This document shows positions 5,061-62,494 of a stretch of DNA of 64,000 nt, piece after piece. The first letter of the stretch is position 1. Each line of letters starts with the position of its first letter. The notes beneath the pieces were generated by a model. That model was given only the letters and a program-made list of their open reading frames with translations, did not search any database and had not been told where the DNA came from. The DNA comes from Macrostomum lignano (taxonomy: Eukaryota), in NCBI GenBank assembly GCA_002269645.1, contig NIVC01001009.1, forward strand, positions 153,402 through 217,401. The letters run 5' to 3'. Both the position numbers and the translations under genes were made by a program.

Positions 5061-6328
5061 TTATCAGAAGCATGAATTGAAGTTTTTTTGTAAAAATATA
5101 AATATGAACGATCTTCAAATAATAACTCACACGAATACTTGAAGTATTAATACAAATGATTAGCTACAAAGCGAAATTAGGCAATCAGCTTGATTAGCAC
5201 GATAGATGGTTTAGTTAGGGTCGGCAGTCAAATGTGGACCCATTGTTTACATTGTTTATACCAAGTTAGTAAGCTCGTATTAGCAAGAACAGACTGACCT
5301 GTTGGTTCATCTAGTGAAAGTAAATATAAGGAATTAATGGATTGATTTATAGTTCACATATTCCTTGTAGAGCCTATTAAAATAAAAAGAATTTAAATAG
5401 TATGTGCTTAAAGTTGTATTATTCAACTTCTTTGTAACTTTTTTAATTTTGCCTGCATTGCTTAGGTTTTATTATAATTAAATCGGCTGATGTCAATCAG
5501 TCATTGAATTAATATTGAAAATTTATTTATAGCCTTTTAAAATCGAAGCCAAACGCAGGATTGTAGGACGACCATTATTAGTGTACATTATTAGTGAAAC
5601 AACTAATTAATGTCTAGATAATATTTGCATAAATTTGTTAAACGATTCTAAAGACAAAAGGATATAACTGATAAGATACAGTAAAGTGTTGAATCTTTAG
5701 CTGACAGATCTTACGGTTTTAAACATTACAAGGGCACCTGCCATTCAATTTTCATGCAACAATATCTAGGTAGAATATATAGGATAGTGCCACAATACCA
5801 TGTTAATTGATATACAGAGCCATAACAATGCAGCCATGACTTTTCAGAGTAATAGGCTAACTCGTTAAGATTTAGTCAACCCCTATCTTGCAAAATGACT
5901 AAATCGTATATAGTTGTTAATGTCTCTATGTAATTGATGTCAAATCAAATTCAAGAATATGCATAAGATTTATCTGTCTACATTACTCAACAATATATAG
6001 TCGATTAAAATAAACAACAAGCGAGAAAGAAGTTCGAAAGCAAAATTTTATTAACGCACAAGTACGACAATTTATTTAAACACTCAATAGGAACAAACAA
6101 ATGCCAGACAGCGTACGATTCCACAATGTCATATTGTTGCGCTAGCGTCAGGTCACGGGACACAAATCAGGCTTCAGTTGAACCAGCAGCTGTAATGGGG
6201 TTAGTGGAAAATATCGTAAGGAAAAATCGTAGAGATCAATTAGATTGAATCCTATATGGCCTGCTTTTTGTGCATCAACTTGGACTTCTGCCGTATAAAT
6301 TCAACTGCCAGCCTTCTGACTTCCACAG

Positions 6329-22655: not shown

Positions 22656-24369
22656 CCTGCCCCATCCGTACCCATAATTTTTCATTTGTAATTTTTCATT
22701 TATTTATACTCGTTGTCTCGTTAGGTCCAAGGAATCTGCAACTTCTTTAACTTTAGACCTAGGTTGATAAGTTAGTTACAGTATTGATAGCATCATAATT
22801 TTGCCTCTAGGGTTTTTGATGGTGCTGATTTAAATTTAAATTTAATATAGGGTAAAGCATCATCAACCAAACAAGGGATCTTCAGAGCCGAATATACAAG
22901 TGACTTTCATTTTTACTGTCTCACAGGGAATATTAGATATTCCAAGAGTCCACAAAAGTGACATATCATTTGAAAGAAGATATTCTCATCTACAAAATGA
23001 GATACAGGTTTGACGATCTACTTAATGGATACTCGAGAAAATTAGCATTATTGATAAAAAATTTGAAGAAATATGCATTTTAAAGTTTTTTCTTGATTTG
23101 GGATGTCTATAGAATTGTTCTATAGACCACAATTTTAAACTTACATTCAAAAGGAAACACTTTTTGAATTCAGTGCTAAATTATCTACAAAATAATATAA
23201 CACATACCAATCTGATATAAAGTTGAGCAAAAAATGTCTTTGTTCGGTTGATGATATCAAATTGCATGTTCGGTTCGGTTTTCAGATCTCAGAATCATCA
23301 ACTGAACGGAAGAATCCTCAAATACGAACGAACAAAAATGGTCCAAAAAAACTTTTTGCTTGCTTCTTCTACCTTATATTAAAAAAGATATTTTATTTAA
23401 AAAACAACTCATTTAAGCTATGTGTTTTTATTTTTACTTGACTTTTTCCTTCTTTTCCTCCTTTATCGTTTAAAAATACTTATAATATAGTCAAAAGAGG
23501 ACGAAAGTAAACTAGGGGTACCTTTACTTTCTAAAAGCAAGGTATTATAGCAAAATAAATGCTCCTCGGGAGGCACTTTGAAATGAACAAAATATCTTGT
23601 CTGCTTTAAGAAACATGTGATAGTTTAAAATTCATTAATGTTAGTCTAATTAGATAGTCTAAAATCAGAAGAAAAGTTTGGCTTCTTCATTACTTTTAAC
23701 ATCAAAAAGTTTGAAGAAATCAGAAAAAAGTCACGATTTTTCTGTTCAATGGGGGTACTATATTCAAATGCAGATAAACAATATTTTTCTATAACTCTTA
23801 GTGCAAGAGTTATACTTTTTAGAAAGAGTATGAATTAATCTTTACAATAAGATATATTGCAGAAAAAACAAACAAGAAATAAAAAAGTTATTAGTGTTCG
23901 AACACAAAAACCGAACACCAGATACCCTGTTCGGTCTGAACATCCCCTAGATTAGAATCATCGTTTGGTTTTCAGATAAAATCATCAATAACTTTTTTTC
24001 TACTTGTGCAATAAAATAAAGCAACCATTCATTTAAAAGAAAAAAAATGTTCTAAACAACTTCTGGATAGTTTTATTTCACTACATATAAAACTTTTTTT
24101 GCTATGCAAGAAAGAAGGTTGAAAAATGATACTTTTATGTTCGGTTGATGATGCTTTACCCTAGCTACCCCAAGTGTGGTCATACATGCGCAACAGTCGG
24201 CCGATCCGGCCGACCGATTTGGCGGCCAACCAAGTAAGTCGCAAAATTGATTAACCGCCAAAAAAAAACGAAAAAACAAAAGACGAAAAAGGGGAAAGGA
24301 AAAGGAAAAAATGAGAAAAAGGGAGCAAAGAGAAAGAGAAAAACACAAAAAAAGTTGTAAGTGCTGTAA

Positions 24370-25895
24370 GTTGCAGCACTGAAGACAAGGTAAGTCGCAC
24401 CGAGGGCAAGCTAAGTCGCACCGAGGGCAAGCTAAGTCGCAGCAGGACCGAGCTAAGTCGCATCGAGGGCGAACTAAGTCGCACCGAGCGAGAGCTAAGT
24501 CGCACCGAGGGCGAGCTAAGTCGCACCGAGGGCAAAATAAGTCGCACCGAGCGAGAGCTAAGTCGCACTAAGTCGCAGCAGGACCGAGCTAAGTCGCACC
24601 GAGGGCGAGCTAAGTCGCAGCAGGACCGAGCTAAGTCGCACCGAGGGCGAACTAAGTCGCACCGAGCGAGAGCTAAGTCGCACTAAGTCGCAGCAGGACC
24701 AAGCTAAGTCGCACCGAGGGCGAGCTAAGTTGCAGCAGGACCGAGCTAAGTCGCACCGAGGGCGAACTAAGTCGCACCGAGCGAGAGCTAAGTCGCACTG
24801 AGGGCGAGCTAAGTCGCAGCAGGACCGAGCTAAGTCGCACCGAGGGCGAACTAAGTCGCACCGAGCGAGAGCTAAGTCGCACTAAGATGCAGCAGGACCA
24901 AGCTAAGTCGCACCGAGGGCGAGCTAAGTTGCAGCAGGACCGAGCTAAGTTGCATCGAGGGCGAACTAAGTCGCACCGAGCGAAAGCTAAGTCGCACTGA
25001 GGGCGAGCTATGTCGCAGCAGGACCGAGCTAAGTCGCACTAAGGGCGAGCTAAGTCGCACCGAGGGCAAAATAAGTCGCACCGAGCGAGAGCTAAGTCGC
25101 ACTAAGTCGCAGCAGGACCGAGCTAAGTCGCACCGAGGGCGAGCTAAGTTGCAGCAGGACCGAGCTAAGTCGCACCGAGGGCGAACTAAGTCGCACCGAG
25201 CGAGAGCTAAGTCGCACTGAGGGCGAGCTAAGTCGCAGCAGGACCGAGCTAAGTCGCACTAAGGGCGAGCTAAGTCGCACTGAGGGCAAAATAAGTCGCA
25301 CCGAGCGAGAGCTAAGTCGCACTAAGTCGCAGCAGGACCGAGCTAAGTCGCACCGAGGGCGAGCTAAGTCGCAGCAGGACCGAGCTAAGTCGCACCGAGG
25401 GCGAACTAAGTCGCACCGAGCGAGAGCTAAGTCGCACTAAGTCGCAGCAGGACCGAGCTAAGTCGCACTAAGTCGCAGCAGGACCGAGCTAAGTCGCACC
25501 GAGGGCGAGCTAAGTCGCACCGAGCGAGAGCTAAGTCGCACCGAGGGCGAGCTAAGTCGCAGCAGGACCGAGCTAAGTCGCATCGAGGGCGAACTAAGTC
25601 GCACCGAGCGAGAGCTAAGTCGCACTGAGGGCGAGCTATGTCGCAGCAGGACCGAGCTAAGTCGCACTAAGGGCGAGCTAAGTCGCACCGAGGGCAAAAT
25701 AAGTCGCACCGAGCGAGAGCTAAGTCGCACTAAGTCGCAGCAGGACCGAGCTAAGTCGCACCGAGGGTGAGCTAAGTCGCACCGAGGGCGAGCTAAGTCG
25801 CACCGAGCGAGAGCTAAGTCGCACTGAGGGCGAGCTAAGTCGCAGCAGGACCGAGTAAGTCGCAGCAGGGCCGAGGTAAGTCGCAGCAGGACTGA
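24370..25895. repeat. About 21-bp subterminal minisatellite of the hAT element (CTAAGTCGCACCGAGGGCGAG and variants)
   Basis: Tandem variant units, all containing TAAGTCGCA. Confidence 0.95.
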
Positions 25896-26110
25896 GTTAA
25901 GTCGCAGAGCATCTTTAGGATTATTAGGATAGGATTAGTTTAGGATGAATTTAATGTATCACTTACTAGGGTGTAGGCTACGTGTGCATTAACGCATCAA
26001 TTTGAAAAATTAAGAATTACGAAGCCAGAAATGGCTAAGGAATAGAAATAGGGATAGAATAACTTATAAGCAGTAATTTTTCAGCCCTATTACAATTGCA
26101 AATCATACTT

Positions 26111-29100
26111 TTAATAATATTTAATTAGCAAATTAAAACTGCAAGATTCTAACGGTCTTATATATGAACTTAGAAGAACTGTAGTCTGACCAGAGATTGT
26201 CCTTTCTGTAGCGCGTTCTGAAGCATCTGCATCTCTAGAGTCTGAATCAGAAAGATGGTCCTCTGTTTCAGATTCAGAGCTGTCATCTTCCATTCCAAAC
26301 CGTCTAGCAAGAGGTATGATTCTCGAACTGTATGTAAAGACAGTATGTAATGTTTCAGCATTAGGCAATAACACTGGGTTGAGCACATTAAATATTGAGT
26401 AGTCATCCTCAGGAAAATAATTACGCAGCTGATCAATTATGCTATCAATGATTCGACTGTGAATCTCATCCAGTGCTGGATAAGCTCCCATGTCAACAAC
26501 ACTGCCACGTCCACTAGCATCAAATAATCTATTTCTTAGAGATCTGTCTGCAGCAGAACCTGGTTGCTTCAACTCAAACCTCTCTGTTGGATCGCTGCTT
26601 CCAGGGCCGGAAGGACAAGCAAAGTTAGAATAAGATAGGTCTCTTGTGTGACATCCTGAATGGTATTCCAGCTGCGGATATCCATCTGCAGTTCCCAAAA
26701 CTCGACGACACTTGCAGGAAGCCAAAAAGTCCACAATGCGAGGACCATTGTTCGTTTTTAAGGTTTCTAGTGAATTGATAAGGTTAGTGTGGCGTTCTTG
26801 CAAGCCAATAAATGTACCCTTGGCTCTTTGAAACTGCAAGGACTCAAATTCCAGTAATTTTAGAATGTCCATGAGAAATAGATGTAATGAATAATACCGG
26901 ACATTTTGCAATGTTTTCAATAATCCAGAGGCAGTTGCTTTACTTTCGTCATCAAAGCCTGAGGAAGGTGATTTGATATTTTCTAAATTTGTCAGAAGCA
27001 AGTAGTACGACTTTCGAATCACATCAAGAGCAGACACTTCCGATGCAACCCACCTGATGCGATATATTCTTTTTAATTCATAGAAAACCAAGTTGAGTGC
27101 TTCCGAAGTTTGTGCCAAAGATGCCTTACGTTTAACAGCGTGGCTCATATAAAATTTGTGTAGAGAATTTATATTCTTATCGAGATGTTGCATAAATGGG
27201 AAGATTTCAAAGGCATGATAGATTGAAAGTTCTAACTTATGCGCTGCACAATGGTGCTGAAAAAATTGTTTGCTAGCCCAAGGCCTCAGTTGACTTATTA
27301 ATCCCACTCGACTTCCTGTCATTACGGATGCACCATCAGTTGTCACCCCCAATAGCCTTCGTTTGATTTCATCTTCTAGCTTGTCATCCGAAAATAAACG
27401 GATGAGAAGTTCATAAATGCTTCGTCCAGTCTCTACTTCAGTCAGACGTTTAAACCGATAAAAAACATCAAATGTTGGCTGTTTTCAAGAACTCTGAAGT
27501 ATATCATGACGTAGCTGTTTGAATGAATATCAGACGTTGTATCTAGTACAATAGAAATCGGAAGATTGTCAGCACTTTTAATGTAATTCACAAATGTCCG
27601 ATGCATTGTATTACTGATTGATTCCACCATTGCTGCGGCACTTTTGCGATGCTTATGATGGCTCCCCATATCCAACCCATTTTTTACTTGTAAATCAATC
27701 ATATTTGGATGAGCACTGAATGGAATATTAGATTTGACTTCGGCATAAACTGTTGTCAAAACTCGGGCTGTTATTTCATCTCGTTTAGTTTTAGCTAGTC
27801 TAGCGGCCTCATTCATCTGTTTGAGTTGCTTTGCAAGAACTGAAGTATGTTTTTCCTTCATCCACTTTATGGCGTCACTGAAGTGTATTTGATGAATGTT
27901 CCTGTAGTTTTCTTCGTACGCTATCTTTTGCATGACCTTTGGGAATGTAGCCTTGTTCTGTTGCAAAAGTTAACTTACGTTGGCTCTCTAGATTTGTCTC
28001 CTTTTTCTTATGTGCATTCAAAAATTTTCTGCAGATCCGACATTGTATTCCAGATCTTGATAGATCTTCGGTGTTTTGAACATATTGAAACCATGTCTTC
28101 ATTTCTTGTGACACAAATTTTCTTGAAAATGATCTGCAATGGTCAAATTAGAGAATATTTTGGGATTTGGACTATTTGTGAGTATCTAAAAGCAATATGC
28201 TAATAAGTGCAATACACAATACACTATACATTAATTTACAGTTCGTCAGTTTCCATTTACTTACTGTGACTGGTGCATCTCCAAAGAATGTAACCACTCC
28301 TCTCGAAAACCAGATGTATCCTCCCAGTCCTTTTTAGGGAAAACTTCAATATTTTCGCCCATCATAGAGGAAGACGAGGGCTTTGATGCTGAAGTGGCTA
28401 GACATGCGTCTGCAGATGTGCTTATGCATGGTATTTTTTTTTGCGATGGCCCTGCTTCTGCAGTATTTACTTGTACAATTTCAACATCACCTGAACCCCT
28501 TGAGTCGCTCGAATCTAAATCAACAATAGGACTTTGGCAAAGTGATCGTTTCGTTGATTGTCTTTGAATATTTACTTGCCTAATAATTTCCACTTGTAGT
28601 TTGCTTGTTTGCTGGTCATTCTCCAACAACTCTCTTCTTTCCTGTACATTTGCAGCAGAGCAAAAATTAGAAGTTTCTGCAGCAGCAGTTTGAACAGCAT
28701 GATCTCGATTAGCTGCTATTTGCTCTGAAAATTCATAGGACCTGGCCAATTCACTACGGTGTGAGCTTTCAGAACATGGAGCTGGAGCAGGAGCTAGTCG
28801 CATTTCGATTCTTTCTGTTGCTGATGAAGCAGATGCTAATGCTGAGTCTGCCAATGTACCTGCTTCTCTTGAAGGTGTATTTATGATGGCTTCAATATTG
28901 TCCTCTAAAATCCAATGAGCACCTGAGCAGTCATTTTCTCTACCTGGAGTCAACTGTCCAAGTTTCCACCTTGTAAAAAGCAAAGGCTTTCGTAACTCAC
29001 TGCTGGATTCAGGGCACCGGTTTATTGAATAGTCCTCATGACCAAGTTCATCCCATTCTCTTGCTGGCTTTAAGATGTAGTTGGGCTTGTCTCTTAGCCT

Positions 29101-29892
29101 ACGATAAATGGACTAAAAAAATGTGCACCTGTTATTTTGTGTACTTCGTGCATAGATGATCATGTCATGCACATTGTTCCTAATAATTTCAGCTAATGAG
29201 TTATCAATGATAATTTTATCTTCATAAACAGGTCTTCTTTGTGTTGCATGCATTTTAGCTAGTCGCAGTTTTCCAATGCTACTGGCAGTTGTGGAACTTG
29301 AACTGTCCGATTCTGATCTAGAAAAGTCTCGTTGATACAAGAGAATAATGGCCATAGCACTTTTACCATTCCCATTCTTTAATGCATTTGGTTCTGTTGG
29401 AATTGTCTTACTAGCAGACTTGAAAAAATCAATGATGGATGACTGCGATGATCCACTAGGAGCGGAACTTGGCAGCCCATGTCTAGTTTTTCCCTGATAC
29501 CCAATAGATGTATCGGTAAAAAACATATCTGCTGCTTCCTGCTTCTCTTTTGATGCAATAACAAAGAAACTGCTGTCCGTTTTGAAGCCCGAGGACCGAT
29601 AGAAGTCAGCAGAAAATGAAACCACAGGTCGTCTAAAATCGCCGCTATATTCTTGAACTCCAATCAGAAGAAAATCACGGAGTCTCACTGGCACTGATCC
29701 TAATAGCATTGCAGTTGTGGAACAAACTTTCTTCAGCTCAATGAACTCTGAAAATTCTTGAGATCCAATATTAGGCTCATCAGTATTTAACTCATTTATA
29801 ACAATTGAGCACTCACTCTCAGCTAGAATACCATTGATAGCTAGGATGCCACTTAGAATCAGTAGGCAAAGACAACTAAGGCTGTACATCAT
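26111..29892 (-). pseudogene. Disrupted gene: signal peptide + lamin-tail-like domain + linker + TTF-type Zn finger + ZNF862/KIAA1586-like hAT transposase
   Basis: ATG 29892 follows a 5'UTR intron (29987-29894). Frame is open to 28265 except one TAG (29113-29115). Intron 28264-28134 (CA|gtaagt...ttgcag|A) joins FREEWLH..HQSQ to SFSRKFVSQEMKTWFQY...CRIC. Frameshifts at about 27890 and about 27470. hAT motifs LDTTSD, GVTTDGASVMTG, HCAAHKLEL, RW. No C-terminal dimerisation domain. Confidence 0.85.
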
Positions 29893-32800
29893 TCTGTGAA
29901 AGATTAAGTCGAGTATATGATTTTGGTGATAAAATAAAATTGATTTATGAGTATTACTATATAAATAAAACATTTAAAAGCCCTTACCTTTACCAATTCA
30001 TGTACAGAAAGTAAGTGTAAATACAACCAATTGCCTTGGTAGTTTAGTTATATGCTCGTATCAGATGCAGGCAGACAGCATAGGCTGCCAAGGTGCTATA
30101 AGTTAAGGTTAACTTTCACTATTTGGCTTTACAGACTGCTTTTATCGCTGCATGCATTGACTTAGCCTTAGCTTGTGCCATCATACTCATACAGCTATAT
30201 ATACATATGTATCTCTGCCACTCCCCACTTTTGCAACCTTACACTGTACAATCATGCCTAAAACACTCCGTGTCAAGTGTACTGTTCTAGTGCCACATGG
30301 GGTACAAATACGATTAGGAATGACAAGAGTCAAAACCATACATGCACAATAGTTGGCCGATATGGACGACTGATTTGGCGGCCAACCAAGGTAAGTTGCA
30401 AAAATGCCCACCCAAATAAATACCAAAGTAGTATTAAGTAGCTGACGAAGCATTTTGCCTTAATAAAGACAGTTATAGTTACTCCTGCCGTTTACCCAAA
30501 GTTGCGTTAATTTTGCTTTTAGGTTTTTTTCATGTAAGTCGCATTTTTGGCCGAAAACTACGTCGCATTTTTGTTAAAACTAAGTCGCACGGCCGACCAA
30601 ATTTTGGAGGTTGCGCATGTATGAGTGTGGTAGTCTTGGTCCTTTACCCTACCATGCATACTAGCTCTTCAATAAAATATTGTATATATGCCACTGTGAT
30701 AATAATGCTTTTCTTATTTGTACAGTAGCTAAATTGTATTATATTTAGAAAAATGGGCCTGCTATTTTTAATTTAGTATGTGTAGTGCATATATCTATAA
30801 ATTATATAGGGCCTAATTATTAATTTGAAATTTTCCTGCCAAAGTTGCCAGTGATATAATAGTAACAGTCCACTTTAGTAACAAATGATAACCATTTTGA
30901 TAATAGCCACTTCTTGAACAAGTGAGAATAAAAATGTTAATATGATATGCTCCAAAAGAATATGTAAACAAACTTTAAAGAAAGAATAGCTAAAATTATT
31001 GAGATACATTATATTCTCACATACTTCAAGAGATTTGGATTGATGCAGACTTATGTATACATGCTAATATGCATAACTGATCTATTTTTATTTCTAGATA
31101 TGCTAGGGTTTAGATACATATACCATACCAAAGTAGACTCAAAGATATCTTATTGGGGCCTATTATAGACCAAATATTGTATATATTAGAATCTCTGAGT
31201 TGGTAACTTGAAATTATAGAATCTACTTTTTTCTTCAATAATTATTTCAAATATTTAATTTTTAATGTAGCATTATTTAATTTTTTCCTTTAATTTTTTC
31301 AAAAACTTAAAAAGCCATAGTCCAGATCATGTTGAGTGCATGCTAGAATGCTTTAAATCAATGTATACTAATGCCAAGTAAATAGACACTGACACTAAAT
31401 AGGGCCTAAGTGCATACCAATGCTAATTGCAGTTGCAACAATATAGTATGCATTTAAAATTTTCTGTGTGCAAATGAAGGAAAGTGTAGTTGTGAGCATG
31501 CATAATTGGCATGCAGTATACATTATAAAATATCAGTGTAAGGCATATAATAGATAGATATTTAAAGTTAGTTGCTGCAAAGTTTTTATAATTCAAGGCT
31601 AAATTGGAGGAGTGGTTTTTCTAAAGGTATTAACTAGGATAAATTTAAATAATTGAAAAGATATCGAGGTCATTCCATGAGAGGGTCCTATTATATATTT
31701 TTAAACTTTAAGCACTTGTAACTTTTGAACCATAATAGATAGAACAAAGCTTCAAAAATCAATATTTGTCAAACTTCTAGTTGTATTTTTCATATAGCTG
31801 CTAATATATTCTAAAACAACTGAACATATAGCAGAGCATAAACAATGCTGATAGTCATTTGATAGTTCTTTGATAAAATGAATATCAGCATAGTTTATGC
31901 TTTGTTATATGTTCAGTTGTTTAGAATTCATTAGCAGCTATATGAAAAATAGCAGCATTCAATAGCAGCAAATATAATTATACATTTCTATTTCAAGACT
32001 GTCAAAAATGACTTCAAATCTATCAAAGATAGCCAAAATCTATATAATCAGCTTCAGCTTATAAGCTATATCAAAGAACCTTAGATCAATTTTTTCACTA
32101 GTAACTTTAGATCTTATCTTCAATGAATCAAGTCTTTTTAAACAGATAAATAATTAATTAGAAGTAAAGTTCATGCATCAGTCATTAGGCAAAGATGTTT
32201 CATGGTAAAGGGTAATATCATCTGTCATTGAGCAATGTCTCAGCAATGCATTTACCAAATAAAAATATTAACATGGATATATAGATAGAATAGTATAAAT
32301 AGGCCCATTAGCTTGTAGATGCTAATTAGGCTTGATCTTAAATCTTGGTTGAATTTCATTTTATCTCAAAAGTATAGAACCCAAGTCTTAAAAATCTTAT
32401 AAATTTGATATTGTTTAGCCCTTAATGTCAACTAATACAGATCCTTTATTGCAGCCAATAGCCATTATTGCAAACACTGTCTATTGTAGATTGGCCCCTA
32501 GCAGTATAGGCAAGGTCTAGCATAGTCTGGCATAGAAAAATATGGTATCTGGCATGGTTACAATAGGGAAATAGATGCTTTCAAGCAAAATAGCAAAATA
32601 TTCTTTTGTAAATCTGTTGACATGGTATATGTAACGAACCAAAGTTGAGGACTCAGTAAAAACAATGGTCACATTAGGACTATACTAGCCAATAGCCATC
32701 AGTAATGCACATAGCCTAATCATTAATAGTTGTCTATCCCTTAGACCATAAAGTCCATAGGTTGAGTCCATATTAATTTGCATATATAATGTGCTCTTAG

Positions 32801-33615: not shown

Positions 33616-36600
33616 ATGATGGACGCAGAAATCGATCAACTGGAGCACGAAGTTGAAAAGATTTACCAGCAGCTTGACTTGAGTGATGATCCTGAGCTGG
33701 AAAAACTGGTTGATGAAAATTTAAAGTGTCGCTACAGAGTCCAGCAATTAAAAATGGTGAGAGCAGAAATTATTCTTTGGCTAATGGCTAGTAGTATGAG
33801 CCTCGTAGAGTAGTCCAGTCTGTTAGGAGTCTGGTAGAGTAGTCCAGTCTGTTAGGAGTCTGGTAGAGTAGTTCAGTCTGTTAGGAGTCTGGTAGAGTAG
33901 TTCAGTCTGTTAGGAGTCTGGTAGAGTAGTTCAGTCTGTTAGGAGTCTGGTAGAGTAGTTCAGTCTGTTAGGAGTCTGGTAGAGTAGTTCAGTCTGTTAG
34001 GAGTCTGGTAGAGTAGTTCAGTCTGTTAGGAGTCTGGTAGAGTAGTTCAGTCTGTTAGGAGTCTGGTAGAGTAGTTCAGTCTGTTAGGAGTCTGGTAGAG
34101 TAGTTCAGTCTGTTAGGAGTCTGGTAGAGTAGTCCAGTCTGTTAGGAGTCTGGTAGAGTAGTTCAGTCTGTTAGGAGTCTGGTAGAGTAGTTCAGTCTGT
34201 TAGGAGTCTGGTAGAGTAGTTCAGTCTGTTAGGAGTCTGGTAGAGTAGTTCAGTCTGTTAGGAGTCTGGTAGAGTAGTTCAGTCTGTTAGGAGTCTGGTA
34301 GAGTAGTCCAGTCTGTTAGGAGTCTGGTAGAGTAGTCCAGTCTGTTAGGAGTCTGGTAGAGTAGTTCAGTCTGTTAGGAGTCTGGTAGAGTAGTTCAGTC
34401 TGTTAGGAGTCTGGTAGAGTAGCTCAGTCTGTTAGGAGTCTGGTAGAGTAGTCCAGTCTGTTCAGGTGAAAGCAGTCGAGGTTAGTTTACAGCTGGTAGA
34501 CAGACAGTTGCCAGACAATATGAGCACAGTTTAGGTAAACCCGAAACCCGCAGAGCATAGCAAAGGAGCGAGCCAAGCCCCTGGATCGCATGATCAGCGT
34601 GCAGGCGGCGCTGAGTGCCCATCTTCAAGCGGCAATACGGGCCGCTTATCCGGAAGCGGCAGCGGCGGTTAAAGTACAGCTGACATCGAGCGCTAAAGAA
34701 GAATTTGGCGACTATCAGTGCAGTAACGCAATGTCGCTGGCTAAAGCGGTCAAGCTGCAGCCAAGGCAGGTTGCCGCGGCGATAGTTGACAAGCTGGAAG
34801 CTGGCGATCTGATTGAGAAAACTGAGATCGCCGGTCCCGGCTTCATCAACATTTCGCTTCGTCGGCAGCCGGTTATTGAGGAGCTGAACCGGCTGCTGGT
34901 GCACGGCGTCCGTCCGCCGCCCGTGGACCGGAAGCGTCGCGTTATTGTGGATTATTCGTCGCCTAACATTGCTAAGCAGATGCACGTGGGTCATCTAAGG
35001 TCAACTATTATTGGTGATAGCGTAGCTCGACTGTGCCGTTTTTTAGGCCATGAAGTGTTGGCTTTGAATCACGTTGGCGATTGGGGCACCCAGTTCGGTA
35101 TGCTGATTGCACACCTGAAGGACCGATTCCCGGATTATGCGACCAAGTGTCCGCCTATTGGGGATCTGCAGGTGAGCAAATTGTAGCTGCTGCATGATTA
35201 TTAATGCTAGTAGTAGTATTAGTAGCAGTTGAAGAATTTAAGTTGTATAAAGTAGATAGTTGTTATTAATGATATTTATTATGAAAAAGTTACTCTCGTA
35301 AATCATTAGTTGTAGTAGTGTAGCATTAATCTTGCCAATAGATAGAAATTTATTGAGCGATAAAATTACAAAGGGCCTGTCAACTTAAGCTCATAAGGTG
35401 GAGCCCGAGTAACCTATGTATGCGTCATTCTGCTCACAGTGACACCAAGAATCTGGGTTGGGCAAAAAGCAACGAAAATTGGACTTGTAAATAATTTAGG
35501 GACTATTATGCTAACTTAAGCTCATAAGGTAGAGTCCTAATTATCCCCTTGGCCTTGCTTGTTCACCCCTATCCCAAGTCACCCCTATCCACTGCGAGAA
35601 GAATGACCTATCATTTGTGTACATAGGTTACTCGGGCTCCACTTTATGAGCTCAAGTTGATAGGCCCTTTACTGGTCATGCTTGGCCAGCTCTAACTCCC
35701 TATTCATCTACAATGCCATGCCGATAATTATTAACCGCAAGTTAATGAAATCATCACTTATCGCAGGCCTTCTACAAGGAGTCCAAGGTTCGATTCGACT
35801 CCGATGAGCAATTCAAACAGCGCGCCTACGCCGCCGTGGTGTCCTTGCAGCGCAGGGATCCGGATTCCACCGCCGCATGGAAACTAATCTGCGATGCTAG
35901 TAGGAAAGACTTTCAGGTAAGCTGTGTTGCTATGGAGTTTCCTTTTTTAGTTTCTTGAAATATTGCTGTAAAGCCATAATTGCATGCGTAAAATGCAAAC
36001 AACGCAGCGCCCATCGTGCGATCCCATTGAGCGGCAGGACTGCTCACAAACATACGCTTATATGGCTGCACCAGCTGTTATCATCCATTTTATATCGTCC
36101 TTAGTGGGTCATCTTGCATGATACTGTGGTACTCGAGGTGCCCTGGCACACCGCTTTTTGTTTTGCCAAAATGTCCGGGTTAACCATCCGTTCATGGTGG
36201 AGGTCACTAAGTTATAAAAATTGACTAATTCACAAATACGAAACATGTATGCACTGAAACTGGAGCACCGACAGCTCAAAACTAAAAGCTGACAAGCGTC
36301 TGTTTAACTGGACAAAGGAGCTGGCGGAAAATTTTACAGCTGAGTGCCAATTTGGCAGCCGGGGTCCAAATTCAGAATGGCAAAATTTGCCAATACGTAA
36401 TTTCTGACATGCTCCCTATTTATTTCCAGCGAGTGTACGGCCGCCTTGGCGTTGAGAATCTGGTTGAACGCGGCGAATCATTCTACCAGGACCTCATGAC
36501 CGAAGTTGTCGACGAATTGAAAAGCGGCGGTCATCTGGTGCCGGACGAGGGCCGCCTCATCATGTGGCCGCCTGGATGCGACATCCCCCTCACTGTGGTG

Positions 36601-38585
36601 AAATCTGACGGCGGCTTCACGTACGACACCTCCGATCTGGCCGCTATTAGACAGCGACTGTTTGCCGAGTCCGCTGATTGGCTGATCTACGTTGTTGATA
36701 TCGGACAGGGAGTGCATTTTAAGGTACGCAGCTTAAAGGCCCTCCTTTATTATTACTCTGCCCATTGTAGCCTCTGTAACAGGTAGGATTTTGGGTCCTG
36801 TCTGCACCTTCTGCTCACGTCGGATAACAAAGAATTGAACTCGAAGCACGGTATTTCTGGGCCCAGGCTGCTGCGGTTCTAGCTACAGCCCAGCCAAGGC
36901 AATGGCTATGCCTTTGGGCCCGCAGATGCGGGCGAGAGAAAAGTGAAGCCAACGCCTCCACTGTCTCTCCTTTCTATTTAAACACTGAAGAACATGCGCG
37001 TGGGAACGAAAACTCTTATAGGCTACATAGATCGAAATGCATACTACGCAGCTAGTTTTAGATGCAGCCGCCCTTTGCAGCTCATATCCCTCCGTGGTTG
37101 AAAAATCTTCGACACCTCGAAGTATAGTTGAAAGTTAAAACGTGCTTGAGAATACCAGCCATGAGTATAATAATGTTGGACTCCTCCAGCCGGGTCGCTA
37201 CCATTCGTCAGTTCGCGCTGCTCTAAGGGGGTCAGTCTCGTCCGCTACCTTGGAAACGGGCATGCAGTCCTCGTGAACTATCTCAAGTAGCTTGACTGGC
37301 ATGTCCATTGCATGCATAGATCGTGCTCCGGTCTTCCTGCCAGATGCACCACAAATTTCCCTCACCGTCTTCTGCTGTGGGGAGACGAGTCTTGGCCTTC
37401 GAGCCGAAACACTGCTCCACTATTGAGACGGATCGCCTCTCAGCGCAGGAAAATTGATCTGCATACCGGTCGCCAAGATAGTGACGTCGGGGTTGACTCT
37501 TTTCTTGTCGATCCATCCGAACGGCCGTTGAACACGCGTCAGTTGGGGCGGCGGCTGTACCGTGGTGGCAGTAGAACTGAACCGCTGTTGCGACTTAATG
37601 CCGTCAAGCACGCCAACGATGCAAGATATCCTCTGGTCGCCGGATCCCGATTTAGTAATGTTGTGCGTCCTTCAACCGGCTTCTATTCAACCCTCTGTTA
37701 TCCTTCGTGACAGGAACTTCGTCTAGCAGACTCACGCGATCAGGGCATGCTTCCCATGTATTCTTCCCATCTATAATTTCCTTCTTTCCCATCTCCCTTT
37801 CTTTTCCCTCTACTTTTTTGCCACAGCCCCAAGCTACCCCCCCCCCAACGTACATGCAACTCTCTTAGCCGTGAACCATTCCCCAGGGCATATTCTCAGC
37901 TGCCGAGAAGGCCGGCTGGCTCAATCCGGCCGTTGCCCGCGTCGACCACGTCGGTTTCGGCGTCGTACTCGGCGAAGATCGCAAGAAATTCAAAACCCGC
38001 AGCGGCGACACAGTCCGCCTGACCGACCTGCTGAACGAGGGTATCGAGCGGGCTGGCGCAAAGCTGGCAGAGAAAGGCCGGGACAAGGAGCTGACGCCTC
38101 AGGAGCTCAAGGCCGCCCAAGAGGCTGTAGCATATGGCTGCATTAAATACGCTGATTTGTCGCACAATCGCAACAATGACTACGTGTTCTCATTTGATAA
38201 GATGCTGGACGATCGAGGCAACACAGCCGTTTACCTGCTGTACGCCTATACTAGGATCAGCTCCATTGCCAGGACCGCCAATCTCAGCCCCGATCAGCTG
38301 CTCAAACTGGCTAAAAGTCCCGGCATCACCGAGCTGCAGCATCCAAAAGAGTGGAAATTGGCTAAACAGCTGCTTCGATTTGCCGACGTTGTTGATAAAC
38401 TGACCCAGGACTTGCTGCTGCACTCGCTGTGCGACTTTCTGTATGAGACCGCCTGCGTCTTCACTGAGTTCTACGATGCCTGCTACTGCATTGAGAAGAA
38501 CCGCGACTCTGGTGAGCTCTCTGTCTGTCTGTCTGTCTGTCTGTGTCTGGGTGTCTGCCTGTCTGTCTGTCTGTTTTTCTGTCCC

Positions 38586-38618
<33 letters not shown>

Positions 38619-38659
38619 GTCTGGGTGTCTGCCTGTCTGTCTGTCTGTTTTTCTGTCCC

Positions 38660-38692
<33 letters not shown>

Positions 38693-38943
38693 GTCTGGGT
38701 GTCTGCCTGTCTGTCTGTCTGTTTTTCTGTCCCTCTGTCTGTCTGTCTGTCTGCCTGCCTGTCTGTGTCTGGGTGTCTGTCTGTCTGTCTGTCTGTTTTT
38801 CTGTCCCTCTGTCTGTCTGTCTGTCTGCCTGCCTGTCTGTGTCTGGGTGTCTGCCTGTCTGTCTGTCTGTTTTTCTGTCCCTCTGTCTGTCTGTCTGTCT
38901 GTCTGCCTGTCTGTGTCTGGGTGTCTGCCTGTCTGTCTGTCTA

Positions 38944-38978
<35 letters not shown>

Positions 38979-39107
38979 GCCTGTCTGTCTGTGTCTGGGT
39001 GTCTGCCTGTCTGTCTGTCTATCTGTCTGTCTGTCTGCCTGTCTGTCTGTCTGTCTGCCTGTCTGTGTCTGGGTGTCTGCCTGTCTGTCTGTCTGTTTTT
39101 CTGTCCC

Positions 39108-39140
<33 letters not shown>

Positions 39141-39465
39141 GTCTGGGTGTCTGCCTGTCTGTCTGTCTATCTGTCTGTCTGTCTGCCTGTCTGTCTGTCT
39201 GTCTGCCTGTCTGTGTCTGGGTGTCTGTCTGTCTGTCTGTCTGTTTTTCTGTCCCTCTGTCTGTCTGTCTGTCTGCCTGCCTGTCTGTGTCTGGGTGTCT
39301 GCCTGTCTGTCTGTCTGTTTTTCTGTCCCTCTGTCTGTCTGTCTGTCTGCCTGCCTGTCTGTGTCTGGGTGTCTGCCTGTCTGTCTGTCTGTTTTTCTGT
39401 CCCTCTGTCTGTCTGTCTGTCTGCCTGCCTGTCTGTGTCTGGGTGTCTGCCTGTCTGTCTGTCTA

Positions 39466-39500
<35 letters not shown>

Positions 39501-40183
39501 GCCTGTCTCTCTGTGTCTGGGTGTCTGCCTGTCTGTCTGTCTATCTGTCTGTCTGTCTGCCTGTCTGTCTGTCTGTCTGCCTGTCTGTGTCTGGGTGTCT
39601 GTCTGTCTGTCTGTCTGTTTTTCTGTCCCTCTGTCTGTCTGTCTGTCTGCCTGCCTGTCTGTGTCTGGGTGTCTGCCTGTCTGTCTGTCTGTTTTTCTGT
39701 CCCTCTGTCTGTCTGTCTGTCTGCCTGCCTGTCTGTGTCTGGGTGTCTGCCTGTCTGTCTGTCTGTTTTTCTGTCCCTCTGTCTGTCTGTCTGTCTGCCT
39801 GCCTGTCTGTGTCTGGGTGTCTGCCTGTCTGTCTGTCTGTTTTTCTGTCCCTCTGTCTGTCTGTCTGTCTGCCTGTCTGTGTCTGGGTGTCTGTCTGTCT
39901 GTCTGTGTCTGGGTGTCTGTCTGCCTGTCTGTGTCTGGGTGTCTGTCTGTCTGTCTGTCTGTTTTTCTGTCCCTCTGTCTGTCTGTCTGTCTGCCTGCCT
40001 GTCTGTGTCTGGGTGTCTGCCTGTCTGTCTGTCTGTTTTTCTGTCCCTCTGTCTGTCTGTCTGTCTGCCTGCCTGTCTGTGTCTGGGTGTCTGCCTGTCT
40101 GTCTGTCTGTTTTTCTGTCCCTCTGTCTGTCTGTCTGTCTGCCTGCCTGTCTGTGTCTGGGTGTCTGCCTGTCTGTCTGTCTA

Positions 40184-40218
<35 letters not shown>

Positions 40219-40717
40219 GCCTGTCTGTCTGTGTCTGGGTGTCTGCCTGTCTGTCTGTCTATCTGTCTGTCTGTCTGCCTGTCTGTCTGTCTGTCTGCCT
40301 GTCTGTGTCTGGGTGTCTGTCTGTCTGTCTGTCTGTTTTTCTGTCCCTCTGTCTGTCTGTCTGTCTGCCTGCCTGTCTGTGTCTGGGTGTCTGCCTGTCT
40401 GTCTGTCTGTTTTTCTGTCCCTCTGTCTGTCTGTCTGTCTGCCTGCCTGTCTGTGTCTGGGTGTCTGCCTGTCTGTCTGTCTGTTTTTCTGTCCCTCTGT
40501 CTGTCTGTCTGTCTGCCTGCCTGTCTGTGTCTGGGTGTCTGCCTGTCTGTCTGTCTGTTTTTCTGTCCCTCTGTCTGTCTGTCTGTCTGCCTGCCTGTCT
40601 GTGTCTGGGTGTCTGCCTGTCTGTCTGTCTGTTTTTCTGTCCCTCTGTCTGTCTGTCTGTCTGCCTGCCTGTCTGTGTCTGGGTGTCTGCCTGTCTGTCT
40701 GTCTGTTTTTCTGTCCC

Positions 40718-40752
<35 letters not shown>

Positions 40753-41020
40753 GCCTGCCTGTCTGTGTCTGGGTGTCTGCCTGTCTGTCTGTCTGTTTTT
40801 CTGTCCCTCTGTCTGTCTGTCTGTCTGTCTGCCTGTCTGTGTCTGGGTGTCTGCCTGTCTGTCTGTCTGTTTTTCTGTCCCTCTGTCTGTCTGTCTGTCT
40901 GCCTGCCTGTCTGTGTCTGGGTGTCTGCCTGTCTGTCTGTCTGTTTTTCTGTCCCTCTGTCTGTCTGTCTGCCTGCCTGTCTGTGTCTGGGTGTCTGCCT
41001 GTCTGTTTTTTTCTGTCCCT

Positions 41021-41060
<40 letters not shown>

Positions 41061-41448
41061 ATGTCTGTCTATCTGTCTGTCTGTCTGTATGTCTGTCTAT
41101 CGTCTGTCTTAGTGTCTGTCTGGGTGTCTGCCTGTCTGTATGTATGTCTATCTTATCCCTCGCTCTCTTATCTGTATTTTTTTCTTTGTCTGTCCGTCTG
41201 TCGGTCCATTTCCTTTGTCCGTATAAGTTTACTATGGTATCTCTCAGACTTTCCAAACGTCTTTGTACATTTGCATGTACGAGTACGGTCGATAGACGAA
41301 CGTATTAAAGCAAGTCGTCCCTCCCGACCCCCTTGCAGGCGAGGTGATCCGCGTGAATCACTGGCGCATCCTGCTGTGCGACGCCACGGCCAAAATCATG
41401 AAGGCTGGCTTAGACATCCTCGGCATCCGGACTGTCGACCGGATGTAG
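33616..41448 (+). CDS. RARS1: Arginyl-tRNA synthetase, cytoplasmic (complete, about 646 aa)
   Basis: Exons 33616-33756, 34554-35171, 35767-35916, 36430-36723, 37887-38511, 41339-41448, all GT-AG with matching phases. N-terminal coiled coil, [65 protein letters not shown], ending GIRTVDRM*. Confidence 0.97.
33803..34465. repeat. 29-bp minisatellite (GTAGAGTAGTTCAGTCTGTTAGGAGTCTG) in RARS1 intron 1
   Basis: Highly homogeneous tandem copies. Confidence 0.95.
35372..35668. mobile_element. PIF/Harbinger-like MITE in RARS1 intron 2
   Basis: About 50-bp TIRs AGGGCCTGTCAACTTAAGCTCATAAGGTGGAGCCCGAGTAACCTATGTA / TACATAGGTTACTCGGGCTCCACTTTATGAGCTCAAGTTGATAGGCCCT with A/T-rich flanks. Confidence 0.75.
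38519..41150. repeat. (CTGT)n-based satellite with 74-bp higher-order unit in RARS1 intron 5
   Basis: The GTCTGGGTG landmark recurs at 40381, 40455 and 40529 (period 74). Confidence 0.95.
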
Positions 41449-44169
41449 TAGGCTCCTAGACTGGAAACCCAAAGCTGAAAATTTATCTTTTAATAATTAA
41501 AATGTAGCTGAAATATTAGGTGCGCCTGTGTTTTGCTTTTCTGAAGTAGCCAGGATTGTTGCTTCCTTTGGATTCGGTGTTCTTTTATAGATTTCTCTCG
41601 CCTTCTATTTGCTACAATGTTTAGCTGTCTTTTCAATTATACAGCTATTTTATTTAGTATCAAATCCGCGTCTCTGCAGATTGTTTCTGTGAGATGAAGT
41701 AATCGTTGAACTTTAGTTTTGTCCAAACTGCTACCAGAATCGCTGTTTAGTTTATTGTCTAATGATTAGCTTTAATTATCTTCCTAAAAATCTGCTCTTC
41801 ATTCCCTTTTCTAGGAATCACCCCTTTATTGCCCTTTCTAGAAATCGCCTTTTCTTTTTTAAGACAAGCCTGTCAAGTGTGTTTCCTACAAGCTAAACGT
41901 GCACAAAATTCTCTTCTATCTTTTTCTCGTTCAAGTGCGTTTTCTCATTGTTCTAGACAGAATGATAAGCACACTGGTATAAAATCACTTCGTGACTTTA
42001 ACCTGATTTATATCTCTTCTGTTTATGAATTTTATTACATAACTAACCCACTACGCGTCGGTAATATGAGTAAAATAACCCGAAAAAAGCTATATGATTT
42101 GCTTGACAAGTGATTTCTCTGTAAGGAAAGAATCGGTTTCGAGAAAATCAGTGGCACAAATACAATGCAGGCAGGAGCTCTGATAAAACAAGGAATATTT
42201 GATCAGATCGCAGGAATTGAATTTTTTCGTCCGCTATTGTCGACTTTCTCTCTGCATAGTAGCCGCCTTCTTGTTGCGGAGAAAAACCTGTCACTATCTT
42301 TGAGCATCTGCTTGATTGTAAATAAGCTCACACTGGCACTTAAGTATTTCCCACACTTACAATAGACTACATATTAGCCCAAGTATGCTACTGTTAGTAG
42401 CACTATGAGAACGATCGGTCCAGAGGAAAGTAGTTTGTCAAAATGCTAAGTTGGCTGCCCAAAAAAAAGTTCTCTCGACAATGACACGGACATTGTTTAT
42501 TGTATTTAGCATATTTTGATTCGATTTATAAGTTCATCCACCTTGCATAGGTGTTTTCATATCATACACAATCCGGTGCATATAGGTGTCATTTTAAGTG
42601 TTAAGTAATATTTAATCTTACAGGTCGCTAATACTATTTTGATGGTAGTAATTATGAATAATATACTCGTAGTAACAAATGTAGATAACTGCAAGAGCTA
42701 TACTGTAAGACTCACAGCGCATGCAAGCTGTTTCAACCTGCTTCGTACAAACATGTACAAACCTGTTAGGCTCATATACATGCTTGGCATATCATATGCA
42801 TATGTACGAGTATTTAGCTGCACTTGCTGATATAGTAGTCTCTGAGTATAGTTATTATTTGGACTATATTGACAGGGTCTCGGGGTGGGTTTGGTGTATC
42901 TGATAATAGGGGACACGCTAAAATATGCGGGCTGGGATCGGAGTTCGCATTCTCAAGTATGTTCATTTCAGTAAAATGGCTAAGGGCTAAGGAGATCTAA
43001 GACCAGAACCTGGAGTGCCAACTCTTTTCCAAGCCCTCGTTTTCAGACAGCTTAGACTGACTGGCTGCAGGTTTTCAGTTGACATACGAAATATAGACTA
43101 TATAGTGTCAAGACAAACATCGCGTCAGTTTTATTATATTGAATTTAACTAAATTTTAACTGAATTCATCCTTACTTCGGTTGCACCAAAGCATTTTTGA
43201 CAGTTGACACTGGAAACGAGGATTTGGGGATGCTGTACTCCATCATTTACTGGTTCTAGGTTCTTGATATAGCCCGGATAGTATGGCTACTAACTAGTAG
43301 TAGCTGGTAAAGCTAAGTTTCGAAATAACGCTAATAGATAATCTTGTAAAGTAAAAAACGCTTCCTGAGCATTGATCTAAGCTTATTTGTAATTCAGCTT
43401 AACAGTACGAGTATTAGCGGACAGCTGTCTATACTGTGGGTAGAGCGATTAATATCCTTTACATGCAAGACTTGATCTGTCATAAAGAATATGATCATAC
43501 ACTTAATAAACTTATATAGAATTTGCAAGTGGCAGTGCCAGTTTTAAGTGGCTGCAGTCTGCTGTGCTCGTCTGGTCACTCTGAATTCTAAATTTTAGCT
43601 CCTATTGAATTTTGCCCATGCAGTGTGCAGTCTGTCCCAGATAACCCGAGTGGAGAGGACAGTTCATTTGTGAGCAGAGGGGAGGGCGGGCAGTCATTCA
43701 ATAGCTTAGTTGTACGAGCTAGTAGTTGCTATGGGGCCTCAATGGTTAAGATAATTAGCCAGATTATAAACTCCAGGCATGGGGGTTTTAATGGAGCCGG
43801 GGCTTAATTGTAGAAAATCCGGGTTGAGTGCGTATGTTGAGAAATCAATGTTCATGTCGCAATCTGGGGGTCCCTCATCAAATTTTGAGCCTCGTGTTGG
43901 TTTGCGCTGGTGTGTCCTCTTGGAGGGCCATTTTTTTGATTGCCATTTGAAGTGGCTGTCCAATTTGAGTCTCCAAGGCATTCGAGTGTGGGGGGAGATG
44001 GCGACTGGACTGGAAACACCTGCTGTCTGCCAGTTGCGTTGAAAGAGCTGCGCACTGACCCCCACTGCCTTTTTATCATTGTGCTGGCTAGTCTCTTCAA
44101 TCACAATCACATGCTCTCCGGTTCCTGATTGATTACGATTACATGCTTGCCTGTGTTCTTGAAACTGAT

Positions 44170-62492: not shown

Positions 62493-62494
62493 TA

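Follow-up and report, generated by a model that had tools for sequence, protein, structure and literature searches.

A decayed hAT transposon of Macrostomum lignano and its relatives carry a transposase preceded by a signal-peptide-like leader and a lamin-tail-like module

The stretch of DNA analysed here, hereafter the window, comprises 64,000 nucleotides of the Macrostomum lignano contig NIVC01001009.1 (assembly GCA_002269645.1, positions 153,402 to 217,401 of the forward strand). Between positions 24181 and 30623 it contains a decayed, non-autonomous insertion of the hAT superfamily, from M. lignano or a very close relative, with a single transposase gene on the minus strand. The product of this gene is unusual in its order of parts: a leader, a module resembling a lamin-tail domain (LTD), a linker, a zinc-finger-like motif and the hAT core, to which the intact relatives add a dimerisation domain. 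An entire clade of hAT transposases is marked by this conserved N-terminal module, which evolves under purifying selection. What is new is a clade defined by a signal-peptide-like leader and an LTD-like module, with at least 202 detectable members, almost all of them on unannotated contigs; a literature search returned nothing relevant on LTD with hAT, LTD with transposable elements, or signal peptides with hAT.

A preliminary description of this DNA, made from the letters alone, had proposed a hAT transposon whose transposase is stably fused to a signal peptide and to an LTD of bacterial style, possibly acquired horizontally. The peptides that it quoted, the in-frame TAG and the GT-AG intron are all found on the minus strand where it had read them, and the fusion does belong to a transposon lineage and is not a one-off host fragment, as it recurs in three M. 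lignano insertions and in relatives of 95%, 64%, 59% and 32% identity. The proposed bacterial style and horizontal origin found no support, since the sole match from outside the family that was identified as an LTD protein, among 150 listed, comes from Branchiostoma.

The element and its sibling insertions

The element ends in perfect 14-bp terminal inverted repeats (TIRs), CATACATGCGCAAC and GTTGCGCATGTATG, at positions 24181-24194 and 30610-30623, and the 8-bp target site duplication (TSD) AGTGTGGT abuts both of them, at 24173-24180 and 30624-30631. The gene therefore does lie in a TIR- and TSD-bounded unit, as had been suggested, but the bounds fall outside the interval 26111-29892 given for it, which is the span of the open reading frames (ORFs) only. 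We fetched the locus of the annotated M. lignano protein P0005 from the same assembly (L007) and aligned it to the window by blastn. The two copies are 98.4% identical from 30624 down to 26186, the homology resumes from 26187 down to 24181, and it breaks off abruptly, exactly at both TIRs. The same TIRs are found in a third M. lignano insertion, L008, which belongs to a subfamily of 70% identity. The TSDs differ from locus to locus, being AGTGTGGT in the window, CTTGGGTT in L007 and AATTTAAA in L008. The same TIRs with a separate TSD at each locus therefore establish three independent insertions of hAT type, and the element moved by cut-and-paste. Both marks of the hAT superfamily are present, namely short TIRs at the limits of inter-copy homology and an 8-bp TSD. 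An inverted-repeat scan of 25000-31000 did not return the TIRs, as one of them lies at 24181; they came to light through the comparison with L007. Whether the element is of the Buster or the Ac type was considered on the basis of a TSD consensus, and the idea was dropped because three TSDs do not suffice.

The features of the element and of its gene are as follows:

24173-24180, unstranded: left copy of the TSD, AGTGTGGT; the same 8-mer abuts both TIRs
24181-24194, minus: 3' TIR (CATACATGCGCAAC on the plus strand); perfect inverted match to 30610-30623
24391-25906, minus: 3' subterminal tandem array of a 21-bp unit, TAAGTCGCACCGAGGGCGAGC, about 70 units (Tandem Repeats Finder)
26186-26187, minus: junction of a deletion of about 504 bp; L007 positions 11519-12022 are not in the window (blastn)
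26187-28133, minus: exon 2, with the CxxC...Hx5H finger and the hAT RNase-H-like core; 98% identical to P0005 and 70% to P0006
28134-28264, minus: GT-AG intron of 131 nt; frame kept, same position in sibling copies
28265-28926, minus: exon 1 linker, from the alignment and the predicted (AF2) helices
28927-29811, minus: LTD-like module, Cys28 to Cys322 (INELN...EFIEL...HDMIIY...SINRC...TPGRENDC), from hhalign against amphioxus repeats
29113-29115, minus: in-frame TAG; Glu (GAG or GAA) in intact relatives
29821-29892, minus: leader and start codon, MMYSLSCLCLLILSGILAINGILA, with a putative cleavage site ILA/ES; hydrophobicity conserved in relatives
29893-30609, minus: 5' untranslated and subterminal region, with 22-bp repeats at 30535-30589 and an internal TIR-like copy at 30337-30350
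30610-30623, minus: 5' TIR; inverted match to 24181-24194
30624-30631, unstranded: right copy of the TSD, AGTGTGGT; the same 8-mer abuts both TIRs

A core, GCGACTTA, is common to the 21-bp array of the 3' end and to the 22-bp repeats of the 5' end, and this motif, present at both ends, may be one that the transposase binds. The array measures about 1.5 kb in the window and at most about 0.7 kb in L007, where it begins near position 12304; arrays of such different length in close copies mean that it grows or shrinks quickly. Tandem and simple repeats make up 15% of the M. lignano genome (PMC5730564), and the abundance of simple repeats, the identical TIRs and the 98% identity to M. lignano copies all indicate that species, or one very close to it, as the source. 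The internal TIR-like copy is inverted, carries two mismatches and lies about 270 bp inside the 5' end, and the first 287 bp (7117-7402 in L007) resemble a TIR-bounded unit of the size of a miniature inverted-repeat transposable element; this arrangement is found in the subfamily of the window and L007 and was not detected in L008. A search of the window against Rfam gave no match.

Gene structure and reading frame

The gene consists of two exons. Its ATG at 29892 opens MMYSLSCLCLLILSGILAINGILAESECSIVINELNTDEPNIGSQEFSEFIELK, and the frame of exon 1 reads MMYSLSCLCLLILSGILAINGILAESEC from this ATG and then IVINELNTDEPNIGSQEFSEFIELK, before the TAG at 29113-29115, beyond which it continues with D.SINRC...LGQLTPGRENDC and runs via DYSINRCPESSSELRKPLLFTRWKLGQLTPGRENDC to KDWEDTSGFREEWLHSLEMHQSQ. 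The donor of the 131-nt intron reads CA/GTAAGT (the slash marks the exon boundary), with its G at 28264, and the acceptor reads TTGCAG/A, exon 2 starting from 28133. Joined across the intron, the frames give ...LEMHQSQ/SFSRKFVSQEMKTW, also read as ...HQSQ/SFSRKFVSQEMKTWFQY. An in-frame intron occupies the same position in L007 (131 nt), L008 (105 nt) and L005 (179 nt), and L009 has none at the junction of module and finger. From this conservation we infer that exon 1 is spliced to exon 2 in Macrostomum.

The module is about 295 aa long (about 320 aa with the leader) and is followed by a linker of about 220 aa. The latter contains two predicted long helices (residues 398-430 and 447-485 of P0001, with a pLDDT of about 90), a variable acidic or Ser-rich stretch, a basic patch and the conserved motif KDWEDTSGFREEWL. 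The basic patch, which reads SQKKIPC in the window and KKKR or RKRR in relatives, lies about 20 residues before the WEDxxxF motif.

Conservation of the fusion across a clade

A word-indexed search with the first 345 residues returned four relatives, all on Logan contigs: P0001 (95% identity) and P0002 (64%), both with an intact exon 1, and P0003 and P0004 (59%). In L005, which carries P0003 and P0004, the 179-nt intron leads in frame into the same hAT core. In the more distant L009 (32% identity) the module, a WEDTSHF motif and the zinc finger stand in one unbroken ORF. A sensitive, exhaustive HMMER search of 1.84 billion representative proteins with the exon-1 alignment (A1) gave 202 proteins at E≤1e-3, of which 94 were at E≤1e-10; a word-indexed protein search with the module alignment gave 7 matches only. 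Among the 27 listed relatives of at least 600 aa, 26 hold the module and the hAT transposase in one ORF, full-length examples being P0026 (1147 aa), P0027 (1120 aa) and P0030 (1131 aa). Members of about 350-400 aa end at the position of the Macrostomum intron, and in the sole such case that was examined, L010, a short intron is followed by the finger and the core.

The purifying selection that the preliminary description had named as support is seen, with a dN/dS of about 0.15. For leader and module together the ratio is 0.155 between the window and L001 (dS 0.12) and 0.14 between L001 and L004; the module ranges from 0.14 to 0.18 and the linker from 0.31 to 0.39. The recurrence of the fusion, the single ORFs, the shared intron and these dN/dS values together exclude a one-off capture or a chance ORF.

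Two of the relatives deserve mention for themselves. L012 (Logan SRR23617196, positions 1-4625) has an apparently uninterrupted ORF of 1147 aa, that of P0026, with leader, LTD, linker, finger, hAT core and dimerisation domain, and inverted repeats of 43 nt form the two ends of the contig. Within the clade it is thus a candidate for an autonomous element. L010 (Logan SRR18067493, positions 3189-5652) lies about 0.5 kb from an intronless gene of ribosome-biogenesis type (RIBIOP_C), and its core motifs are degenerate, with GCDASS in place of TTDGAS and HYMGHRLSL in place of HCAAHKLEL. Domestication or loss of activity may explain this derivative.

The module resembles the lamin-tail domains of an animal surface protein

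The exon-1 profile matches P0151 with an E-value of 3.2e-7. This protein, LOC118427361 of the amphioxus Branchiostoma floridae, is annotated as an 'LTD domain-containing' surface protein and contains eight PF00932 stretches (E 7.5e-95). When an alignment of 87 family sequences (A2) was compared by hhalign with an alignment of seven LTD repeats of P0151 (A3), the probability was 99.4% and the E-value 9.5e-22, over columns 1-181 of 181. The aligned pairs, module first, include INELN with INELN, EFIEL with EYIEL, FFVIAS with YFVIGS, NGN..AIILL with NGPDAVALY, HDMIIYGR with LVDAIVYSR, YSINRC with ESLSRC, and TPGRENDC with TPGAANDC.

The likeness extends over the motifs INExN, EFIEL, FxIGS, NG..A..LL, vDxvvY, SxxRC and TPGxxNDC and to the positions of the Cys residues, four of which are among the conserved residues of the module (alignment A4). 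It extends also to the start of the protein, as P0151 has a signal peptide right before its first domain and then reads VIINELN. What the module resembles is the opening part of metazoan multi-LTD proteins of the cell surface, with their signal peptide and first LTD. It differs from the canonical repeat by two insertions of roughly 30-45 aa, falls below the Pfam threshold and is present in one copy rather than as eight repeats; furthermore, it is fused to a transposase, whereas the LTDs of P0151 are joined to a transmembrane anchor. AlphaFold2 (AF2) with 87 sequences predicts a beta-rich module with a pLDDT mostly above 90; with 6 sequences the model was useless (pLDDT 36).

The same logic of domains is known from bacterial extracellular nucleases of the ExeM/NucH type, in which a signal peptide is followed by an LTD and then by a DNA-cleaving enzyme. 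Their catalytic domain is unrelated to that of the element (endonuclease/exonuclease/phosphatase as against an RNase-H-like DDE core), the host of the hAT element is an animal genome, and no sequence link between the module and the bacterial LTD-nuclease fusions was found here.

The leader

In the window the leader reads MMYSLS-CLCLLILSGILAINGILA/ES, with small residues at -1 and -3 of the putative cut ILA/ES. Its sequence diverges among P0001-P0003, yet its hydrophobicity is kept (alignment A1). Of the 73 relatives whose ORF reaches at least 8 residues upstream of INE, 55 have a strongly hydrophobic 9-mer within 60 residues, directly in front of the domain, in agreement with the signal-like stretch of the preliminary description. 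In most cases a Cys comes after the hydrophobic stretch, at one or two residues from INE. Basic residues tend to lie on the N-terminal side of the stretch and acidic ones on its C-terminal side, as in a signal peptide that is oriented for cleavage. By this heuristic the leader is signal-peptide-like, and the protein that bears it may be secreted.

The transposase half

In its catalytic part the transposase is an ordinary hAT of the group that includes FAM200, ZBED5 and KIAA1586, and the ends and TSDs of the element are canonical. This half is 98% identical to BOX15_Mlig001790g1 (P0005) and 70% identical to BOX15_Mlig021755g1 (P0006), both from M. lignano; PF27073 (FAM200-ZBED5 RNase-like) is precomputed for both proteins, and PF05699 for P0005 also. 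Exon 2 contains the motifs LDTTSD, TTDGASVMTG, HHCAAHKLEL and RIRWVAS of a hAT-type RNase-H-like DDE core, which two frameshifts split in the window copy; the local Pfam scan gave no match for the hAT core of the window protein. Of the TTF-type finger that had been named, only a pattern is seen, a conserved CxxC...Hx5H in exon 2 upstream of the hAT core; neither zf-TTF nor PF14291 (DUF4371) matches the window protein in Pfam, scanned in both halves, and zf-TTF, DUF4371 and LTD are likewise without a match in 19 relatives. PF14291 is precomputed only for the more distant relatives P0007, P0011 and P0014. The dimerisation domain PF05699 (Dimer_Tnp_hAT), deleted in the window copy, is present in L007/P0005, P0007, P0026 and P0030, and was the sole Pfam match of the direct scans, in a few full-length relatives, P0026 and P0030 among them.

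Compared with the hATs of the FAM200/ZBED5/KIAA1586/C17orf113 group (PF27073, PF14291, PF05699), the element is alike in its 8-bp TSDs and short TIRs, in the finger upstream of the core, in the D...TTDGAS...HCxAHxLxL...RW motifs and, in its siblings, in the dimerisation domain. It differs by the N-terminal leader and LTD-like module of about 320 aa and by the helical and basic linker of about 220 aa, and the window copy differs further in being frameshifted and without a dimerisation domain. P0008 is a relative that lacks the N-terminal module.

Decay of the window copy and its siblings

Comparison with L007 and with the protein relatives shows four lesions in the window copy. The preliminary description had noted the TAG and missed the three others, which are deletions of 2 nt near 27880 and of 1 nt near 27465, both frameshifts of exon 2 mapped against L007, and the deletion of about 504 bp at 26186/26187. 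The last removes about 135 codons at the end of the gene, and with them the hAT dimerisation domain and the stop codon, and tblastn with the C-terminus of P0005 found no match in the window. Position 26111 is a spurious ORF end, reached by read-through beyond the deletion junction. With a stop codon, two frameshifts and no C-terminus this copy is unable to make a transposase; its ends are intact, and it could therefore be mobilised at most in trans.

The siblings are decayed in other ways. In L007, exon 1 is short of 40 nt and contains a stop codon, and the copy further shows a 2-nt insertion and an E>K change in ERGFS, a conserved C-terminal motif of hATs; L008 has lost the first 267 or so codons of exon 1. 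As the lesions of the three copies are different, the copies decayed independently after inserting. The E>K change of L007 lies near position 11690 (residues 565-575 or so of P0005), where L007 reads AEAKRGFS, L008 AEAERGFS and the relatives ADVERGFS; the annotated P0005 may thus be catalytically dead too, if the Glu of ERGFS is the catalytic one, as we assume.

The TAG of the window is a GAG>TAG change, in which G>T lengthens a T6 run. L005 and L006 (59% identity) have a TAA at about 1103-1105, in the same Glu codon (CTFF/E/S), and both stops arise by G>T, TTTTTTG becoming TTTTTTT. This shared site suggests that the homopolymer is a hotspot of mutation or, possibly, that it misled the sequencing. 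Programmed read-through of the TAG was considered and rejected, since both stops extend the T6 run and lie in pseudogenes that are otherwise frameshifted.

Origin and fate of the fusion protein

We consider probable the overall reading that the element is a dead hAT copy from a clade whose transposases share a leader and an LTD-like module, and that this module was captured from a host gene; a dual fate of the product, set out below, is a more tentative part of it. The captured piece would be the 5' exon or exons, coding for the signal peptide and the first LTD, of a gene whose product in the host is an LTD protein secreted or exposed at the surface, and a metazoan rather than a bacterial source is favoured because the nearest LTD that we found is metazoan. 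The fusion raises a problem of localisation: mobility needs a nuclear transposase, while the leader and the conserved Cys residues argue for entry into the endoplasmic reticulum (ER). One way out would be that most of the product enters the secretory pathway and that a minority, arising by inefficient targeting or from an alternative isoform, reaches the nucleus through the basic patch and performs transposition. In that case the main role of the module would be that of a brake or sorting device, built into the protein, on the dosage of the transposase. The basic patch (KKKR, RKRR) looks like a nuclear localisation signal. FGF3 and PTHrP both combine a signal peptide with such a signal and have a dual fate; without any homology to them, the LTD-hAT transposase would likewise carry an ER leader and a basic nuclear-type patch in one polypeptide, and its dual targeting is a hypothesis by analogy. 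We hold the dual-fate model tentatively, as the most economical reconciliation of these features.

Several results weigh against this interpretation. Pfam does not recognise the module: PF00932 has no match in the window protein at E≤1 nor in nine relatives at E≤0.1, and no family member was matched. A Foldseek search of the PDB gave no match below E 0.1, the best of the weak ones being Ig-like domains, and a HMMER search of PDB sequences with the module profile found none. The LTD call of the preliminary description is therefore supported by sequence profiles and not by fold. The basic patch, moreover, equally resembles a furin-type RxK/RR site in some relatives, and a cleavable leader would put the whole transposase into the ER lumen, which makes the fusion paradoxical.

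A different solution would be that the Macrostomum gene makes two products, a secreted leader-LTD-linker protein from exon 1 and a leaderless transposase from exon 2, the latter either from an internal promoter or after trans-splicing of a spliced leader onto the acceptor of the intron, with a start at the Met of EMKTW. Wherever the intron is present (window, L007, L008 and L005) this Met lies 10 codons past the acceptor, the intronless relatives have an Arg in its place, the M. lignano annotation begins P0006 at exactly this residue, and the donor CA/GTAAGT, if left unspliced, leads to an immediate TAA. However, the frame is kept over the intron in three diverged lineages despite differences in its length and sequence, the single ORFs of the long relatives have no stop between the modules, and the conserved basic patch and WEDTSxF motif lie in exon 1, upstream of the finger. 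The conserved intron frame and the single-ORF relatives thus argue that the fusion protein is made, and we regard two products as rather unlikely. It is quite improbable, in our opinion, that the leader is an uncleaved anchor that tethers an LTD-transposase facing the cytoplasm or nucleoplasm to the ER or the inner nuclear membrane and thereby directs integration preferentially into chromatin at the periphery. With its 18-20 or so residues the hydrophobic stretch would suffice to span a membrane, and an LTD with a long linker and a basic patch recalls, by our own reckoning, lamina-associated proteins; yet the basic N-terminal and acidic C-terminal flanks favour the N-in orientation of a signal peptide, with the LTD translocated, the conserved Cys pattern is shared with extracellular LTD repeats, and the residues at -1 and -3 of the presumed cut are small.

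As to the source of the module, INE...EFIEL and TPG..N are typical of bacterial LTDs as well, and this had suggested a horizontal gain from bacteria. We consider such a gain very improbable: among the 150 listed matches, only partly classified individually, the one identified LTD protein from outside the family is that of Branchiostoma, although the library is dominated by prokaryotes, and this protein has the same start, signal peptide then LTD, and the same Cys positions. Hardly credible, finally, is the view that the locus is no transposon gene but has been domesticated by the host, or that a host exon and a hAT fragment came to lie side by side by accident. Some distant relatives are gene-like, such as L010 near its RIBIOP_C gene with degenerate catalytic motifs, and the core belongs to the FAM200/ZBED5/KIAA1586 group, which includes domesticated vertebrate genes. 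Both exons nevertheless lie inside one TIR- and TSD-bounded unit at three loci, the copies are independently decaying pseudogenes, and the architecture is kept in more than 100 sequences. The marks of domestication, loss of TIRs and TSDs and fixed single-locus orthology, are not those of this element.

A conserved, putatively ER-targeting leader and an extracellular-type domain on a transposase pose a paradox of localisation across a large clade, and its resolution could reveal a new way for DNA transposons to regulate or localise their enzyme. It is unlikely, though conceivable, that the transposases of the clade are truly routed via the secretory pathway by their leader and LTD and that the module serves the element outside the nucleus or the cell. 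If so, the roles to be considered would be delivery of the transposase from cell to cell or to the germline, binding of extracellular or cell-surface ligands, and ER-gated timing of transposition, and this would be a new layer of transposon biology rather than a passive brake. The fusion would also exemplify the capture of a host 5' exon turned into a stable part of a transposase. M. lignano is tractable by transgenesis and relatives with a full-length ORF exist (L012), which makes the question directly testable. For annotation, Pfam misses the module, and the M. lignano models P0005 and P0006 omit the N-terminal exon.

Neighbourhood of the element in the window

The element is flanked on one side by the exons of an Nrap/NOL6-type gene on the minus strand, which reach up to 12425, and on the other by an arginyl-tRNA synthetase gene on the plus strand, from 34590 onwards. 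The former, a nucleolar protein gene, has its exons at 6669-12425 (Nrap_D4 and Nrap_D5), and those of the synthetase are at 34590-38520 (Arg_tRNA_synt_N, tRNA-synt_1d and DALR_1). Directly after the latter, at 38520-41460, a GTCT-type microsatellite of about 3 kb inflates a spurious ORF of 1100 aa. A paired-type homeobox gene follows on the plus strand over two exons, 45719-46282 and 50369-51151 (RRSRTTF...ARVQ and then the second exon); Pfam matches Homeodomain in the first exon only, and the second was recognised by inspection. Long Pro/Ala tracts of low complexity come next, and the DNA that separates the two exons contains minisatellites. At 58788-63960, on the minus strand, there is an apparently intact non-LTR retrotransposon, with an ORF2 of 1236 aa comprising endonuclease, reverse transcriptase and RNase H, and an ORF1-like protein of 396 aa upstream of it.

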